Sequence record: ON529851.1
Strand: one strand, 5' to 3'
Length of the DNA: 64,000 bases
Both the position numbers and the translations under genes were made by a program. How positions within the stretch are numbered: the stretch's first letter is position 1; each line of letters starts with the position of its first letter. Of the stretch, positions 1-29,374 are shown in pieces. Below the pieces are notes generated by a model that ran no database searches, had not been told where the DNA came from, and was given only the letters and a program-made list of their open reading frames with translations.

Positions 1-303
1 TCGCCCGTCGTCGCCGACCGCTTGCGCCAGCACGTAGCGGGCCACGGCGGCGTCCGCCGGGACGGCCCACGCCACAACCATATCCAGCGTGTTACCGTCG
101 GCGTCGTGGGCGAAGATCGGGGAAACAGGGCCAGGTTCTTCCACGACGTCGGACGGGTCGAGGCCGAAGGGTCCGTCGAGCCAGACGGCGCGGGCCATGG
201 TCAGGCCGTCGCTGTAGGCGTCGCGTTCGGCCAGCGTCGCAAAAGGGCCGTGAAGGATATTCGCCGGGCAACGCAGATAGTGTCCAACCGCTGAATCGGT
301 CAT
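1..303 (-). CDS. Hypothetical early protein, runs off window start
   Basis: ATG at 303-301 after GGGAGG RBS and CtrA-type promoter (346-360); frame open to base 1 (MTDSAVGHYLRCP...). Confidence 0.7.
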   Translation of the reverse strand, partial: MTDSAVGHYLRCPANILHGPFATLAERDAYSDGLTMARAVWLDGPFGLDPSDVVEEPGPVSPIFAHDADGNTLDMVVAWAVPADAAVARYVLAQAVGDDGR

Positions 304-411
304 TGGGGCCTCCCTTGAATGAGCCTCATGCCTAGCACCGATTCGTTAACAAGAGGTTAACGCCGTGCGGCGGTCGGGCGTTAACCTTAACGGGCGTTAG
401 GAAAGCCAGGG

Positions 412-822
412 TCACAGGCCCCGGCACGTTGGGCCGAACCCGGACTCGATCGACGCGGGGTCGGTCAGGGGCAGGGCGCAGCGCCCGCAGCGGCCCTCAT
501 GATAGACCTTGAGCGCGGGCGGGATGCGCCCGGCGGCGAGGTGGGGCCACGCCCACGCGAAGGCGCGCGCGGACGGGGCGTCGGCGCCGATGCTGGCGCG
601 GCGGCCATGCCGGAACGAATCATCGGCGAAGATCGTGCCGAGGAAGGTGTAGTCGGCTTCGTTGTCCGCGCCCGTCAGGACCGACACGAACCAGACGCTG
701 TCCTTGGCGCCCACGCGATAGGTGAAGCGGGCGCCGGTGGTCTCGCTGACCAGCGTGACGCGGGCGCGCCCGGCGAGCATGAAACGGCGGACGGTTTCGG
801 CGGACATTTCAGCGGCGGACAT
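412..822 (-). CDS. DUF6011-like Zn-ribbon protein
   Basis: C-terminal CGRCALPLTDPASIESGFGPTC matches the recalled DUF6011 pattern. Confidence 0.7.
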   Translation of the reverse strand: MSAAEMSAETVRRFMLAGRARVTLVSETTGARFTYRVGAKDSVWFVSVLTGADNEADYTFLGTIFADDSFRHGRRASIGADAPSARAFAWAWPHLAAGRIPPALKVYHEGRCGRCALPLTDPASIESGFGPTCRGL

Positions 823-964
823 GGGGTCGGCTCCGGGCGGGTGATCCTGTCACCCTAGAGCCGATTCGTTAACAAAAGGTTAAGCCCGCGCCGTCGCCGG
901 GACGCGTTAAGGTTAACCGGCGGCAGGCGGGAAAACGCCGCCCGGCGAACCGGGCGGCGCGGGA

Positions 965-1474
965 TCAGGGGGCCAGAGGATCGGGGGCGGGGATGATCTC
1001 GACTTGACGCCGGCCCTGCTTGACGCGCCCGACCTTGATTCGCTTCTCGACGGCGGCGCGCGCCCATTCGTTGCGCGTGGTCTCGGCGGCGTGGCGGCCC
1101 GTCTCATCAACGGCGCTGTAGATGGAATACAGCAGGCCGAACAACGCGACCTCCGGCATGGCCTTGACCGCCTCCAGCATTTCGCCGTTATCGTAGGCGC
1201 CTGACACTTCCACGACGCGCGTCCCCGCGCCGTGCTGCATCAGAATGTAGAAGGTCGATTTGCGGTCGCGGCGGCGCTCGCTTTCGCCGGTGCGGCGGAC
1301 GGCCAGCTTGACGTCATAGGCGCGGTAACAGACGCCCGTGCCGGGCTTGCCGTTGTCGCTTCCCAGGATTCGCATTTCGCGTTCCGGCAGGGGATGGCGC
1401 AGGACCTCGAAGGGCTCGAAAGTCGTGTCGTCGGCGTAGCCCGACCCACGGGCGATGATGGCGCTTTTCAGCAT
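965..1474 (-). CDS. Hypothetical early protein
   Basis: ORF track; GGAGA RBS, CtrA-type promoter, downstream terminator. Confidence 0.8.
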   Translation of the reverse strand: MLKSAIIARGSGYADDTTFEPFEVLRHPLPEREMRILGSDNGKPGTGVCYRAYDVKLAVRRTGESERRRDRKSTFYILMQHGAGTRVVEVSGAYDNGEMLEAVKAMPEVALFGLLYSIYSAVDETGRHAAETTRNEWARAAVEKRIKVGRVKQGRRQVEIIPAPDPLAP

Positions 1475-1528
1475 GAGGGGTCTCCGGTTGCGAGCCTGTA
1501 TCTCTACAGGCCCGGCGTTAACAGGGGC

Positions 1529-1966
1529 TTAATACGTGATGTCGTTCGTGCGGTCCCGCAGGGCCTCGGCGTAGGTGTCGAAGGGCGCCGATTCGGCCTC
1601 TTCTTCGGCGTCATACCAATGGAACTTCTCGACCGGGGCGGCGTCTTCCGTCGCGCCGGGGTAGGTGCGCAGGAAGACTTCCAAGTCTTCCAGATCGGCG
1701 TCGTCCGGGTCCATTTGCAGGGCGAGGGCCTTGGGCTGGGCCGGGACCGCGCCGCCCGAATAGACGTCCACGCACACGCCCATGAAGGTCGCGATTTCGG
1801 TCGCCTGCTTCAGGAACAGCCGCTGATTGTCGCGGGGCAGGGCTTGGGCCACGGCCACCGTATAGGCGTCGCTGGCGAGGCTCCAGACCAGTTCGGTGAA
1901 GGTCTCGACGCCGTCGTCCATATCGGCGTAACCGACGACGGTGTAAAAGGCGGGGGATTCGGCCAT
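1529..1966 (-). CDS. Acidic hypothetical early protein
   Basis: ORF track; RBS and promoter; D/E-rich. Confidence 0.8.
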   Translation of the reverse strand: MAESPAFYTVVGYADMDDGVETFTELVWSLASDAYTVAVAQALPRDNQRLFLKQATEIATFMGVCVDVYSGGAVPAQPKALALQMDPDDADLEDLEVFLRTYPGATEDAAPVEKFHWYDAEEEAESAPFDTYAEALRDRTNDITY

Positions 1967-2156
1967 GGGGCGCTCCTGTTTCGTTGGGGATACCCTAGAC
2001 CGCAGAAGTTAACAATAGGTTAAGACGATGCAGTTTTTCGGGCGGGCGCGCCGGGCGTTAACCTTAACAAGCCGTTAACCTTACCGGCGGGCGGGCAGGG
2101 GCGGCCCCGGCCTAGAGCCGGGGCGCCGGGGCGGCGTCGTTCCGCCCCGTTCCTTG

Positions 2157-2360
2157 TCAGTCTTCGTCCGGGCGGTAATCCGGGTCGGGATCGAAGCGAC
2201 CGCAGAAGGTGCGGCCCTCCGATTCCATGTCAGGCTGAAAATCCCGGATGACGTAGAGCGCCCGGCCCACGGTGTTGAGGTTGAGCACCGCGACCGGGGC
2301 GCCCTTCCGGTCGGCGGTGCGTTGCGCGTCGCGCTTGGCCTGATCGAGGGTCATGCTCAC
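2157..2360 (-). CDS. Hypothetical protein
   Basis: Start overlaps upstream stop; terminator at about 2104-2125. Confidence 0.75.
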   Translation of the reverse strand: MSMTLDQAKRDAQRTADRKGAPVAVLNLNTVGRALYVIRDFQPDMESEGRTFCGRFDPDPDYRPDED

Positions 2361-2725
2361 CCCTCGTAACGGTCGTGAACCGAAACCGGGCCGCCGAAGC
2401 GCGAGCCGCCGAGACGTTCCACGGCTTCGTTAAAGCGGCTGTCCGAGGTTCCGGCGTAGTTGCCGCCGAACATCAGCCAGCGCGTGTCCATCTCGCCGGT
2501 GTCCGTCGCCGGGACGATCTTGACCGCGCCGCGCACGTTGCCCTTGACCAGATAGGCGGCGGGGCGCGACGGGTTGGGGTCGAACGGGCCGTCGACGTTG
2601 ACCAGGGTCAGTTGCGCGACCTTGGACGACACGCCGCCGTTGGTGCAGTCCACCGAGTCCAGCTTCAAAATGTCGCCCGGTTGGTCGGCGGCGCAGCGGC
2701 GGTAGATGGAAACGATCAGGCCCAT
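2357..2725 (-). CDS. Phage hypothetical protein
   Basis: RBS, promoter; TNGGVSS / MFGGNY..TSDSRF motifs recalled from phage proteins. Confidence 0.8.
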   Translation of the reverse strand: MGLIVSIYRRCAADQPGDILKLDSVDCTNGGVSSKVAQLTLVNVDGPFDPNPSRPAAYLVKGNVRGAVKIVPATDTGEMDTRWLMFGGNYAGTSDSRFNEAVERLGGSRFGGPVSVHDRYEG

Positions 2726-2798
2726 GGGGCTCTCCTTTGTTTGACCTTCACACCATAGCGCGAAGGTCTTAACAAGAGGTTAACGCCGGAAAGATTTT

Positions 2799-2963
2799 TC
2801 AGGCGGCGGGAAACAGGGCAGCGGTCGAGACGCCGCCTAGCAGGGCGCGGCGGAACGGGTCGAGCGCGACCACGGCGGCGGCCTTCGTCTTGCGGGCGCG
2901 CGGCTTGGGGGCCTTCGCGGCGGCGGGCTTGCGGGCGCGGGGTGTCTTCGGGGCGTCGGTCAT
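2799..2963 (-). CDS. Small K/A/R-rich basic peptide (54 aa)
   Basis: ATG 2963 below degenerate box at 3020; MTDAPKTPRARKPAAAK... Confidence 0.5.
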   Translation of the reverse strand: MTDAPKTPRARKPAAAKAPKPRARKTKAAAVVALDPFRRALLGGVSTAALFPAA

Positions 2964-3123
2964 GGCAGGGCCTTTCAGCAGGGGTTGAAGTCCAGAGCCC
3001 GCAGCCTCGCATTGATTCCTTACCAAAGGATTAACGGGCCAGGCGCCGCCGCCGGGCGTTAACCTTAACGGATCGGGCGGGACCGTTAACCACGGCGGAG
3101 GGGGGTCCGCCGTGGTCGTGGGG

Positions 3124-3462
3124 TCAGTTCACCCCGGCGATGATCGACAGGTCGCCGTAGAACTTGCCCTTGAACGGGATGCAATCGCCTTGCGGCGAGA
3201 GTTGGTGTTCAATCCAGAACCGGTCGTCGCCCTCGACCTTGGAGCCGTGCACGTTGCTGTAGCCCTTGGCTTCCCACTCGGCCATGACCTCGGGGAAGGC
3301 GGCGCGGAAGGCCTCGCGCTCCATGGCGAACTTGAGTTCGCTCATGTAGGTGATCTGGATATAGCGGAAGGGGCCGATGGTCGGGCCTTCGAATCCCCAG
3401 TCCTCCATGTTCTGATCGGCGTCGTCGCGGCCATGGAACAGGCGCAGATGAACGTCGGACAT
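3124..3462 (-). CDS. Hypothetical early protein
   Basis: Start re-assigned to MSDVHL after GGAGA RBS. Confidence 0.8.
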   Translation of the reverse strand: MSDVHLRLFHGRDDADQNMEDWGFEGPTIGPFRYIQITYMSELKFAMEREAFRAAFPEVMAEWEAKGYSNVHGSKVEGDDRFWIEHQLSPQGDCIPFKGKFYGDLSIIAGVN

Positions 3463-22648: not shown

Positions 22649-23020
22649 TTAACGGCGGTCTTCGCTGAGGCGGGCGAGTATTTCGTCGTTCGTCATCGTG
22701 TCCAGCAGGTCTTGCACCTGACGGGCCTTTTCGTCCTCGACCGCCTGAGCCGCCGCCTTGGCGCGGCGATGCTCGGCCAGCGCCGCCTTGCCCGCTTCGG
22801 TCGTCTCCGGGTCGATGGTCATGTAAAGGCTGACCTCGCGGCCCTGCCGATCCACGAAGGTCAGGCTTCCAGACGGACGCACCTTGACGGTGAACATCGC
22901 CTTGACCAGCCGCTCGGCGGTCTCTTGACCGAAGTCGCCGCCGAAGCTGCCGCCCGCCGCCTTGAGGGTGTTGTCGCTCTTGAGGCGGGTGTGATAGCCG
23001 ATGTTCTTGTAGGTGTGCAT
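22649..23020 (-). CDS. Hypothetical protein
   Basis: Start MHTYKNIG after AAGGAG. Confidence 0.8.
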   Translation of the reverse strand: MHTYKNIGYHTRLKSDNTLKAAGGSFGGDFGQETAERLVKAMFTVKVRPSGSLTFVDRQGREVSLYMTIDPETTEAGKAALAEHRRAKAAAQAVEDEKARQVQDLLDTMTNDEILARLSEDRR

Positions 23021-23030
23021 GGGGCGCTCC

Positions 23031-23369
23031 TTAGAAGGGAATGTCGTCGTCGAACGCGGGCGTCGTGACATAGGTCTGGGCGGGGCGGGCGCGGCGGGCG
23101 GCGTCCATCTCGGCGCGCTCCTCGTCCGTCGCGCTCCAATACTCGTCGTCTTCCGGGTGCGCGCCGGGCTCGCCGCGATAGTGCGGGTTCTTCACCCAAG
23201 CGTCGAACGGGTGCAGCAGCCACTCCACGTCAGGCGCCTCGAAGCCTTCCGACTGAGCGAACCCCGACAGGGCCAGGCTCATGTATTCGCCCTGGCTCAG
23301 CGACTCCATCGCCAGAGCGTCTTCCTTTTCGCGGCGGGCCTCTTCGGCCATTTCGATCACATCGCGCAT
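23031..23369 (-). CDS. Small acidic protein ending in SSB-like tail DDDIPF
   Basis: C-terminus PAFDDDIPF; W..NPHY.G.PG.HPE motif; no OB fold evident. Confidence 0.8.
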   Translation of the reverse strand: MRDVIEMAEEARREKEDALAMESLSQGEYMSLALSGFAQSEGFEAPDVEWLLHPFDAWVKNPHYRGEPGAHPEDDEYWSATDEERAEMDAARRARPAQTYVTTPAFDDDIPF

Positions 23370-23545
23370 CGGCGTCTCTCCTTGTGAGCCCCCTTTATGC
23401 CAGACAGAAGTTAACAACAAGTTAACGCCGACGCTTTTCTGCATTTTTCTTCAGGCGGCGGCTGCGGGCGTTAACCTTAACAGCCTGTTAAGGTTAACGG
23501 GCGGGCGGGGCCTGGGAAACGGCGTCCCGTAACGGGACGCCTCTC

Positions 23546-24533: not shown

Positions 24534-24893
24534 GTTAACCTTAACAGGGCGTTAACCTTAACAACCCTGCCCGCTCTAGGGGTATGACCGGGTAGGGCCA
24601 GGTATGACCGGGTCATACCGGGGCGGATTCCCGCTGAAAATCACCCAAATTCGCCGAATTTCGCCCAAAATCGCCGGATTTTGACCTTAAATCACTGTTT
24701 TTACTCGATTTTTCAGGTTTTCAGGCGGTTCAGCGGCCGTTAACCTTAACAGGGCGTTAACCTTAACGCTGGAATGGTTAACGGGGCGTTAACCTTAACG
24801 CGGGGATGGTTAACGCGGTGTTAACCTTAACGCCCGGATGGTTAACGGGCCGTTTACCTTAACGCCGGGAGGGTTAACGCCCCCAGGGTTAAT
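24534..24893. promoter_or_regulatory. Dense gene-less cluster of TTAA boxes; GGTATGACC-G-GGTCATACC palindrome at 24601-24619
   Basis: Chained GTTAACCTTAAC and TTAA-N7-TTAA units. Confidence 0.75.
24631..24727. repeat. Phased A/T-tract segment, inverted relative of 25802-25893
   Basis: A/T tracts about every 10 bp; reverse complement aligns by eye with 25802-25893. Confidence 0.7.
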
Positions 24894-26650: not shown

Positions 26651-29374
26651 TCAGCCGAACGAGCCGATCTTGCGGGAGCCGAAGCGGGTCCGGGAACCCT
26701 TCATCCACTGGAGGGCCTGGGTCATGGCGTCCACTTGGTCGTCGTGCGCGCCTTCGGGGAACTGCCCGACTTCCTTGGTGAAGGCGTCCATCCACTCGGC
26801 CTTCTTGGGCAGGAAGACGTCGCCGGCGGTGATCAGCGGGCTGACCTCGTCGAAGCGGAATTCCTTGGACTGGCCCTTGGGGTCGATGCCGACGATGGGG
26901 GCCGGGGCCAGGCGGCGGTGGCTGGTGGTCTGCCCCCGGTTCTGGATGTAGGCGGTGCCCTGGCCCTTGTCTTCGACCAGGATCACATCGACGCCGTCCT
27001 TGACCGCCTGCTGCTCGATCATCTCGATCATGGCGTCGAACTCGACCTTCTTGCGGGTCTGGCGCAACAGGTAATACTGGCGGTCGTTGGTCTCGCCCCA
27101 GGTCTGCACGACCGTGTAGTCGGCCCGCTGGTTGACCTTGGCGGCGCAGTCGACCGACAGGACGATGCGGCGGAAGTGGGCGCGCTTGTTCGGGATCGCC
27201 TTGCCGTGCTCATCGACATGGCCCTCGGCGCGTTGCTGCTTCAGCGCCTCCTCGGTCAGGTGCGGGGGCCGCTCGTAATACTGGAAGCGGCCGGCGATCG
27301 AGTCGTCGGAGGTCGCGGTGGCGTTCTGCTGGTAGACCAGGGCGAAACGCTGGTAGGACCATTCCGTCTTCTTCGTCTTGAAGAACGACAGGTCGTAATA
27401 GTCCCACAGCACGTCGCCCAGCTTGCGCCCGAGCACGTCGGTGTCCTCGTCGATGCACAGGGCCGGGGCCTCGACCTGGGTCCACTGGGCGTAGGCCGGC
27501 AGACGCGGGTTCATCTCCATCAGGTGGCCCGTCAGGTCGTGCTCGTGGAAGCGCGTCATGATCAGGAACATCTTGCCGAAGGGCAGCATCCGCGAACCGA
27601 TGTCGCCGACGAACCAGGTGTTGACCTTCTCGCGGGCGGCGGCCGATTCCGCCTCCTCGATCTTGGCGTAGGGGTCATCGACGCAGGCGAAGTTGGCGCG
27701 GAAGCCGTGAACGGCCTGCCCGGTGCCCTTGGCGACATACTGCCCGCCGTAGCCGGCGATGGCCCATTGGTCGGCGGCGCGCGTGGCGTAGTCGACCACC
27801 ACCTCGGGGAAGACGCGACGGAACTCCTGACCGCCGACCAGGGAGCGAATCTTCTTGGAGAACTCGTTCTCGACGAAGCGCTGGCTGTGGCCGCCGCCGA
27901 TGATCTTCAGCTTGGGATTGCGGCCCAGGCGCCAGGCGACGAACAGGCGCGAGGCGTAGGTCGAGTTGTGCACCACCACGCCGTCGGCGGTGAAGGTGTG
28001 ATCGCCGAACACGGTCAGGCAGCGGCACTCGCCGACGCCGGCGGCCTCGACCATCGCCACCTTGTCCGTCACCTTCGAGCCGTAGGGCAGGCGCTTGGCG
28101 ATGAAGTCCGGTTCGTGGCGGCCGTGGAAACTGATCCCGGCGTCGAGCAGGCGTTCGATCGCCGGCCCGCGCACCACCAGGGCCGCGCGGCGGTTCGCCT
28201 GCGGATGCTCGACCACGGCGTCGACGTCGTAACGGGCCAGCAGCTTTTGCAGGTCCTGGGCGAAGTCGGCCGACTTGATCCAGGCGATCAGGGTGGCCTG
28301 GCTGTATTTCTTCGGCGTCTCGCCGCGCAGGCGGAAGTAGGTCGTCAGGAAGTGCTTGATCTTCTCGTCGTCGCCCCGGAACACGAACTCGGGCACGCGG
28401 CGCTCGCCGGCGCGCTTGGTCATACCGAGTAGTTCCTGGTAGGGCCGGGTCGTTTTCGAGCGCAGCCGGATCAGGTGGCGCTTGTTCGCCGGCACCCAGC
28501 GACGGGCGTAGCGGATGCCCAGGGCGTCCAGCACCCGCTCGGCCTCCTCGACATGGGCCAGGGAGGAGAACCACATCTGGAGGTTCTGGTAGGGGGTGCC
28601 GTTCGGCGCGGTCGCATCGGTGTAGGAGCCGAAGGCGGCGATGAAGGCGGCGAGGGCAAAGACGTCCTTGGGCTGACCGGACGTGTCCTCGGGTTTTTCC
28701 GGGGTATGGCTGGTCATACCGACCACGCTCAGGTTCATGCGCGGGCGCAGGTTCTGGGCTTCGATCCAGTCGCCGTCGACCAGGAAGGGGTGGTCCGGGG
28801 CCGACCAGATCGTGCGGCCCTTCTCGGTCGTGATCTTCAGCAGCGGCAGTTCGCCCTGAACGTGGACCGCCTCGACCTTGCGGCGGCGGCCGGCGTGGGT
28901 GACGACCTCTTCGCCGACCTCGATCTCGCCCAGGGGCTTGTAGGCGCCCGAGCCCATCAGCACCGGGGTCGAGACGTGCAGCGGCTTGGCGTGACCGGGC
29001 GGGCAGTTCAGGATGAAGCGATCCAGTTCAGGATCGTTCTCGATCTTCTGGAGCAGTTCGGTCAGGTAGATGTGCCACTTGGATTCCGGCGGCTCATCCG
29101 GCGAGACGTATTCGCAGAAGGCGTTGAAGTCGTCGCGCGCCAGCGGCAGCAGCCGCTCCAGGTGGCGCTTTTGCAGTTCGTCGCCCAGGCCCATCAGGGC
29201 GTCGATCTGCTGATTGACCTCCTGGACGCCGGTGATCTTGATGATCCCCTGGCGGGTGTTCTCGGGCAGGATCAGGCCGCGCTCGGCGGCGCGCTTGGCT
29301 TCGGCGGCGAGGTTGTGGAGTTGCTTGGTGGCCTGCCGCGCCTTGATGCGGTCGGCGATGATGTAGTCAGACAT
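26651..29374 (-). CDS. terL: Terminase large subunit with intein
   Basis: Walker A CPPGHAK|ST split by intein; Walker B FACVDDP; MTRFH; nuclease IVLSVDCA...HDDQVDA. Confidence 0.95.
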   Translation of the reverse strand: MSDYIIADRIKARQATKQLHNLAAEAKRAAERGLILPENTRQGIIKITGVQEVNQQIDALMGLGDELQKRHLERLLPLARDDFNAFCEYVSPDEPPESKWHIYLTELLQKIENDPELDRFILNCPPGHAKPLHVSTPVLMGSGAYKPLGEIEVGEEVVTHAGRRRKVEAVHVQGELPLLKITTEKGRTIWSAPDHPFLVDGDWIEAQNLRPRMNLSVVGMTSHTPEKPEDTSGQPKDVFALAAFIAAFGSYTDATAPNGTPYQNLQMWFSSLAHVEEAERVLDALGIRYARRWVPANKRHLIRLRSKTTRPYQELLGMTKRAGERRVPEFVFRGDDEKIKHFLTTYFRLRGETPKKYSQATLIAWIKSADFAQDLQKLLARYDVDAVVEHPQANRRAALVVRGPAIERLLDAGISFHGRHEPDFIAKRLPYGSKVTDKVAMVEAAGVGECRCLTVFGDHTFTADGVVVHNSTYASRLFVAWRLGRNPKLKIIGGGHSQRFVENEFSKKIRSLVGGQEFRRVFPEVVVDYATRAADQWAIAGYGGQYVAKGTGQAVHGFRANFACVDDPYAKIEEAESAAAREKVNTWFVGDIGSRMLPFGKMFLIMTRFHEHDLTGHLMEMNPRLPAYAQWTQVEAPALCIDEDTDVLGRKLGDVLWDYYDLSFFKTKKTEWSYQRFALVYQQNATATSDDSIAGRFQYYERPPHLTEEALKQQRAEGHVDEHGKAIPNKRAHFRRIVLSVDCAAKVNQRADYTVVQTWGETNDRQYYLLRQTRKKVEFDAMIEMIEQQAVKDGVDVILVEDKGQGTAYIQNRGQTTSHRRLAPAPIVGIDPKGQSKEFRFDEVSPLITAGDVFLPKKAEWMDAFTKEVGQFPEGAHDDQVDAMTQALQWMKGSRTRFGSRKIGSFG
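27965..28984 (-). mobile_element. 340-aa intein with degenerate LAGLIDADG domain, Pro1 (class 3-like)
   Basis: Starts PLHVSTPV, block B DHPF, block F CRCLTV, ends VVHN|S; LAAFIAAFGS and FLTTYFRLRG as decayed endonuclease motifs. Confidence 0.9.

Follow-up and report, generated by a model that had tools for sequence, protein, structure and literature searches.

Over a dozen enzymes of bacterial replication, recombination, and repair use the C-terminal tip of bacterial SSB as a hub to find ssDNA, and the tip has been pursued as an antibacterial target. On many genome-maintenance enzymes, it fits a hydrophobic pocket that has basic residues on its flanks. The terminal phenylalanine and its carboxylate are essential for this docking. 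In E. coli, the proteins that dock on the tip include Pol III chi, PriA, RecO, RecQ, RecJ, RecG, ExoI, RNase HI, and Ung.

The C-terminus of E. coli SSB is ...MDFDDDIPF (PMC5872125). The nearest precedent for this ending on a phage protein of another ancestry is the DUF669 (T7 gp2.5-like) ssDNA-binding proteins of prophages, which end in DDDIPF; the authors suggest that they mimic the C-terminus of SSB and engage host proteins (2026, PMC13687109). A full-text search of the literature on SSB tail mimics or decoys in phages did not return a description of an SSB-tip protein that does not bind DNA. Here we consider such a candidate, MARCHEWKA_01640 from a Brevundimonas jumbo phage. The new elements are the homologous family to which the tip protein belongs, the size and folded core of that family, and how its tails compare with those of resident SSBs.

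MARCHEWKA_01640 and its genomic setting

We analyzed a stretch of 64,000 nucleotides from ON529851.1 ("the window"); window positions are record positions minus 62,000. A tblastn search with the 112-aa product gave a 100% match to Brevundimonas phage vB_BpoS-Marchewka (ON529851.1), a 348-kb siphovirus of the Dolichocephalovirinae that was isolated on B. pondensis LVF1 (PMC10070969). The sequencing runs in which this stretch is found come from wastewater or viral metagenomes and, being stored as contigs, do not report on expression. In the GenBank record, the gene is annotated as a "hypothetical protein." The features that we refer to below are:

23031-23369, minus strand: coding sequence of MARCHEWKA_01640, 112 aa plus stop codon; member of PHROG 36991
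23376-23383, minus strand: Shine-Dalgarno-like AAGGAGAG, 6 nt ahead of the ATG at 23369 (read from the sequence)
23410-23426, minus strand: promoter element of the CtrA-box type, GTTAAC-N5-GTTAAC, 40 nt ahead of the ATG
23238-23369, minus strand: N-terminal helical hairpin, residues 1-44 (helices 2-22 and 26-44)
23145-23222, minus strand: conserved core motif W..L...D.W..NP.Y.G.P..HPEDD, residues 50-75 (beta-hairpin and loop)
23055-23144, minus strand: linker, residues 76-105 (helices 75-79 and 82-94, then a coil rich in Ala, Pro, and Thr); family members differ in both its sequence and its length
23034-23054, minus strand: tip FDDDIPF, residues 106-112, a putative docking peptide like that of SSB (from conservation in homologs and likeness to SSB)
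22649-23020, minus strand: downstream cistron, 123 aa, which starts 10 nt past the stop codon with no box between

The original prediction was of a 112-residue acidic protein with a DDDIPF tail and without an OB fold, and both parts of it are borne out. The ORF translation and the GenBank coding sequence (23031-23369) agree on the protein, which has a net charge of -17, contains WVKNPHYRGEPGAHPE, and ends in ...TPAFDDDIPF-stop. (We rejected a 137-aa frame that starts at 23444 as the gene, as it crosses the promoter box and is absent from the GenBank record.) As to the OB fold, a Pfam scan of the product gave no match of any kind, hence none to the SSB model PF00436, and a six-frame search for PF00436 in the records of phages Marchewka and Gurke gave no match (the controls were positive). 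The AlphaFold2 model is mostly helical. The protein thus has the acidic DDDIPF-type tip of a bacterial SSB and not its N-terminal OB-fold domain. With a net charge of -17 and no OB fold, it is unlikely to bind ssDNA.

AlphaFold2 gave a poor model with 6 sequences (pLDDT of 62) and a model with a pLDDT of 93.3 and a pTM of 0.71 with 150 sequences. The latter has helices at residues 2-22, 26-44, 75-79, and 82-94 and a beta-hairpin (strands 50-53 and 57-60) that is followed by a long loop with NPHYRGEPGAHPEDD. Residues 95-112 were modeled as coil, with a pLDDT of about 72. With its four predicted helices and two short strands, the core is not an OB fold. Residues N61, P62, and P72 are invariant across the family, and conservation reaches at least 90% at G42, W50, D56, W58, Y64, G66, H71, and E73; as judged from the alignment, this exceeds the needs of a passive tail carrier. 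The best explanation of the model and the sequence is that MARCHEWKA_01640 is a soluble, folded, and strongly acidic protein, with a predicted non-OB core, a variable acidic linker rich in Ala and Pro, and an SSB-like tip.

Structure searches did not place the core. Foldseek against the PDB found no fold relative (best E = 2.9), VIA-align against 48,161 chains matched the helical hairpin alone (best Z of 2.9), a search of BFVD with the model returned uncharacterized homologs alone, and a search of the ESM Atlas gave no usable match. A sequence-profile search of the PDB had a weak local match (E = 0.31) to the NPPY region of the BREX methyltransferase PglX (8c45), which is most likely due to chance. 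We also rejected an N6-adenine methyltransferase with NPPY as its motif IV, as this protein is much too small for one and its second Pro position is variable. Similarly, we do not consider this to be a DNA-mimic antirestriction protein of the ArdA/Ocr type, as ArdA matched just 3 of 150 members (at E = 0.025) and there was no matching fold.

The pattern GTTAAC-N5-GTTAAC, which is the CtrA box TTAA-N7-TTAAC, has 37 matches in the window (between 345 and 24857), and none would be expected by chance. The boxes up to 24144 are in a single orientation, ahead of small minus-strand genes. CtrA control of promoters in phiCbK-type phages has been published (PMC9437464). MARCHEWKA_01640, which sits in this array, may be expressed early. 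A scan of the surrounding sequence for E. coli-type promoters and terminators turned up nothing of relevance. A 29-nt perfect palindrome (23470-23498, GTTAACCTTAACAGGCTGTTAAGGTTAAC) and a GC-rich hairpin (23521-23541, GGCGTCCCGTTACGGGACGCC) lie between the upstream gene and the MARCHEWKA_01640 promoter; the hairpin is not followed by a T-run. Further along, between the block of orphan genes and the terminase region, a dense cluster of GTTAAC-type boxes (24540-24857) has no gene behind it, and four of these boxes (24745, 24777, 24809, and 24841) are spaced at exactly 32 nt.

MARCHEWKA_01640 and the downstream cistron (22649-23020) are probably co-transcribed, given the layout. The product of that cistron had no significant match in Pfam or PHROG, and it is not similar to the gene that follows the Gurke homolog, so it is not a conserved partner. 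At the position of this cistron, phage Domovoi has a gene that is annotated as a winged helix-turn-helix DNA-binding protein.

MARCHEWKA_01640 belongs to a minus-strand block of small orphan genes, 3.3 kb from the large terminase gene. Scans of the neighboring genes with Pfam, NCBIfam, and PHROG gave no functional assignment. An unrelated phage contig, about 30 kb long, has a family member as the first gene of an operon that diverges from the terminase. When we clustered the neighbors of 150 family loci, we found no conserved partner gene; the one thing that recurred was that some of the loci are close to the terminase. The surroundings of the Bradyrhizobium copy gave no lead either. (The large terminase subunit in the window, 907 aa at 26651-29374 on the minus strand, contains an intein at residues 135-470, with Intein_splicing and Hom_end_hint matches, ahead of its Terminase_6C nuclease domain.)

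The PHROG 36991 family and its C-terminal tip

Conservation of the tail in homologs had been named beforehand as a test of the idea, and the tail is conserved in all 7 close relatives and in about 40% of the family. The gene is present in all seven of the Brevundimonas jumbo phages of the phage collection. Five of the homologs end in FDDDIPF, while those of Gurke and Kikimora, which are about 50% identical overall, end in LDSDIPF. Gurke and Kikimora use other codons in the tip than the other phages do (ATA vs. ATT for Ile and CCT vs. CCC for Pro), as well as another stop codon. These synonymous changes imply that it is the peptide that is conserved, not the DNA. Metagenomic homologs with 63-77% identity end in SDDIPF, GDDIPF, DDGMPF, or DQDIPF, behind linkers that have diverged and have indels. 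Going by these comparisons, the tip is under purifying selection in all of the close relatives.

A single occurrence of the motif would be a poor argument. Across 64 kb, 0.27 occurrences of D-x-P-F-stop are expected and at least one is seen in 24 of 100 shuffles, so a lone occurrence is within chance expectation and the case rests on conservation in homologs. In six-frame translations, [DE]-I-P-F-stop occurs exactly once in Marchewka and once in Gurke, and in both phages the occurrence is this gene.

The product matches the HMM for PHROG 36991 ("unknown function") with E = 1.2e-11 over residues 33-89, and 148 of 150 aligned homologs match it as well. No Pfam or NCBIfam model covers the family, as judged by scans of the protein and the 150 homologs; PHROG 36991 alone was matched. 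When we searched 1.84 billion representative proteins with a profile of the family, there were 701 matches at E ≤ 1e-3, of which 112 were at E ≤ 1e-10; the matches listed range from 48 to 137 aa. The first helix is absent from many of the short members.

Among 155 sampled members, 65 end in PF, and 58 of these have acidic-x-PF. The consensus for the members that end in PF is D(-6) D(-5) D(-4) [ILV](-3) P F, behind a variable acidic linker. We also scanned IMG/VR with a back-translated core motif and found 119 further loci, of which 37 have the PF end. Pooling the sequences with a recognizable core, the tip is present in 107 of 298. The linker in these is a median of 31 residues long, with Asp+Glu making up 27% of it, and it is also rich in Ala and Pro. 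In the other 191, the stop codon comes a median of 9 residues past the HPE motif; an acidic end is usual (118 of 191), and the last residue is aromatic in 49. As read from these sequences, PHROG 36991 has two architectures: the core alone, or core, linker, and SSB tip. Because the core is found without the tip in more than half of the family, it should have a function of its own and be more than a carrier for the tail. When we mapped the presence of the tail on a tree of the core, there were 47 changes, as compared to 48.5 in shuffles (the tree is built from about 50 columns and its representatives are at most 50% identical).

One IMG/VR locus is unusual. In IMGVR_UViG_3300014491_000004 (3-3383, minus strand), the family core makes up the C-terminal end of an open frame of over 1127 aa, which had no match in Pfam. 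The core may be fused here to a large phage protein, or a gene boundary upstream of it may have gone unrecognized.

Turning to bacteria, a motif scan of their genomes gave 31 copies, which are probably on prophages or other mobile elements; most are in Acetobacteraceae and Bradyrhizobium. A tblastn search of plasmids had no match. Many acetic-acid bacteria (genomes of Komagataeibacter, Novacetimonas, Acetobacter, and Gluconacetobacter) contain near-identical members of 100 aa that end in WWPDDPTP. There are sometimes two of these per genome, one was on a contig that was assigned to a plasmid, and a second variant ends in RDPCPF.

To compare the tip to real SSB tails, we read the SSB genes in 30 genomes from the order of Candidatus Phycosocius, an alphaproteobacterium that has a family member; Caulobacter vibrioides was a positive control for the same SSB model. 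Within this one order, all 29 of the SSBs with a readable frame end in [DEN]D[DE]IPF (14 with DDEIPF and 11 with DDDIPF). For five genomes that contain a family member, the tail of that member and the tail of the resident SSB are:

Bradyrhizobium: family tail ADDDIPF; resident SSB tail MDDDIPF
Gemmatimonadales MAG: family tail GEDELPF; resident SSB tail PDDDLPF
Bacteroidota MAG: family tail DLDDMPF; resident SSB tail EMDDLPF
Phycosocius: family tail DLEDPF; resident SSB tail LEDDIPF
Komagataeibacter: family tail RDPCPF or WWPDDPTP; resident SSB tail LDDEIPF

In three of the five, the family tail resembles that of the resident SSB, including the difference between phyla in I or L, and in the other two it has drifted. 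This is suggestive, although five genomes are a small sample.

Candidate roles for the tip

The evidence supports the view that MARCHEWKA_01640 is a functional mimic of the SSB tip on a non-OB protein, because the tip appears to be under selection, because it recurs in about 40% of the family behind a linker that varies freely, and because it matches the SSB tips of the host's order. Our preferred, if tentative, explanation is that the protein is a soluble mimic that competes with host SSB as a decoy or inhibitor. It would be made from the host-CtrA-type promoter, and its tip would insert into the hydrophobic and basic pockets where host genome-maintenance enzymes dock on SSB. As the protein would not bind ssDNA, it would compete with SSB and uncouple the docking enzymes from the host's ssDNA, which might protect or favor phage DNA. 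Binding to one particular target may be made tighter or more specific by the core. Several points weigh against a decoy. First, more than half of the family consists of a core without an SSB-type tip. Second, a monovalent tip is a poor competitor of tetrameric SSB unless it is abundant or is aided by the core. Third, the match between the tail and the host SSB is imperfect, with divergence in Komagataeibacter and Phycosocius.

A more elaborate proposal, which we regard as doubtful, would make PHROG 36991 a widespread and undescribed family of bipartite effectors. The core would grip one host genome-maintenance or defense enzyme, or would mimic its DNA substrate, and the borrowed tip would plug the SSB-docking pocket. 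Sister jumbo phages would have converged on this with unrelated acidic proteins. In CtrA-timed phages, such effectors might protect the incoming genome while lysis is deferred.

An adaptor is nearly as plausible as a decoy, although we would still call it somewhat unlikely. Here the core would bind a specific target (a protein of the phage's replisome or recombination machinery, a protein bound to phage DNA, or another host protein), and the tip would recruit a host SSB-dependent enzyme, such as chi/clamp loader, PriA, or RecO, to that target and so redirect host machinery to phage DNA. The 11 invariant or near-invariant residues in about 30 core positions are beyond what a tail carrier needs, and the core exists alone in about 60% of members, both of which fit with this. 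Also, we did not find a recognizable SSB in the phage, so a tail in trans could be useful, and the layout of core, linker, and tip resembles the hub logic of SSB itself. However, we found no conserved neighboring gene or partner, and the core does not have a known fold or family that would name its target. Recruitment and inhibition are indistinguishable in silico.

Another candidate is docking within the phage, in which the tip would address a phage polymerase, helicase, primase, or RNase H and its likeness to SSB would reflect shared chemistry rather than mimicry of the host. T7 gp2.5 and T4 gp32 have acidic, Phe-terminated tails that organize the phage's own replisome, which is a parallel to this. 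Much of the DNA metabolism of this group of jumbo phages is phage-encoded, and there is a ribonuclease H gene 8 kb away.

The related Caulobacter phages bear on this. CcrBL9 has EIPF-stop on three unrelated proteins (at record positions of about 13.5 kb, 52.8 kb, and 237.6 kb): an 88-aa protein with a charge of -28 that ends in YDDDEIPF, a 230-aa HNH-like protein that ends in DADEIPF, and a 143-aa protein that ends in LDDEIPF. There are no EIPF-stop proteins in phiCbK. We did not find PHROG 36991 by tblastn in the phiCbK-type phages of Caulobacter, including CcrBL9. A tip on three unrelated proteins, one of which is HNH-like, suggests an internal code. Against this, the tip of MARCHEWKA_01640 is exactly the bacterial consensus and not a phage-specific variant, and across phyla the family's tip resembles the resident SSB tails (LPF in Gemmatimonadales, L/MPF in Bacteroidota, and IPF in Alphaproteobacteria). 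Also, the family is found in phage contigs of about 30 kb, with no replication gene recognized in the stretch that was sampled. Overall, we think that internal docking is improbable.

Less probable again is that the DNA-free tip is a decoy for host defense. It would saturate or mislead a sensor or nuclease of the immune system that either senses the SSBs of phages or docks on the tails of SSBs. Accessory gene blocks are a typical seat of anti-defense genes, and this gene, like other members of the family, is in a block of small orphans beside the terminase. Defense that is triggered by phage SSB has been described in a preprint on DRT4. Three members had weak matches to ArdA and one matched the RadC JAB domain, but the ArdA matches are not significant (E = 0.025). 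None of the searches that we made found a defense system that reads the SSB tip, and the wide host range of the family argues for a universal target over a sporadic defense system.

Finally, it is very unlikely that the ending serves no docking purpose and either resembles SSB by chance or is a signal for degradation or stability. Chance can account for one D-x-P-F-stop in 64 kb, and the tail is scattered on the tree of the short core (47 changes vs. 48.5 when shuffled), but that tree is too weak to be informative (about 50 columns, with representatives at most 50% identical), acidic-x-PF is at the extreme C-terminus of 58 of 155 members behind linkers that cannot be aligned, and there are synonymous substitutions inside the conserved tip codons.

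If our preferred reading of MARCHEWKA_01640 as an SSB-tip mimic is true, it would, as far as our literature search shows, be the first viral decoy or adaptor to be described for the SSB hub. It would also give a function to a family of over 700 sequence clusters that has none, and it would provide a ready tool for perturbing the SSB interactome.

Comparison with known systems

Ocr, ArdA, and T7 gp5.9 are, like MARCHEWKA_01640, small and very acidic proteins that are encoded in accessory regions, and they act by molecular mimicry, as MARCHEWKA_01640 may. However, they mimic DNA rather than a peptide motif, they do not have an SSB-type tip, and they are not significantly similar to MARCHEWKA_01640.

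The DUF669 proteins are closer, in that they are phage or prophage proteins of non-SSB ancestry that carry the bacterial SSB tip, as in PHROG 36991. In contrast to PHROG 36991, they bind ssDNA; PHROG 36991 is strongly acidic, has no match to DUF669, and has a fold without a match among solved structures. MARCHEWKA_01640 does not match either of the models for the DUF669/Enc34 type (PF05037 or PF10991), and a direct Pfam scan of the protein was also negative for them. More broadly, PF00436, PF10991, and PF05037 had no match in Marchewka, Gurke, CcrBL9, or phiCbK, although for PF10991 and PF05037 the controls were also silent, so their absence is weakly shown.

The 88-aa protein of CcrBL9, a phage of the same subfamily (Dolichocephalovirinae), is likewise small and extremely acidic with an SSB-type tip, and it is in the terminal-repeat gene block. 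It is not homologous to MARCHEWKA_01640 and does not have the NPxYxG..HPEDD core; in a profile comparison with the PHROG 36991 family, the six residues of the tip alone align. This points to convergence of the 88-aa protein and this family on the same device, as far as can be judged from the sequences. The same tip on different and mostly acidic scaffolds in sister phages supports a functional tip, whether the pocket belongs to the host or to the phage.

As compared to bacterial SSB itself, MARCHEWKA_01640 is a protein of 112 aa with a net charge of -17, without an OB fold or a match to PF00436. In both proteins the tip is at the end of a variable linker, which is rich in Gly, Gln, and Pro in SSB and is acidic and rich in Ala and Pro in the family of MARCHEWKA_01640. 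The last seven residues, FDDDIPF, are identical to those of E. coli SSB, so existing assays can be used to test this idea directly.
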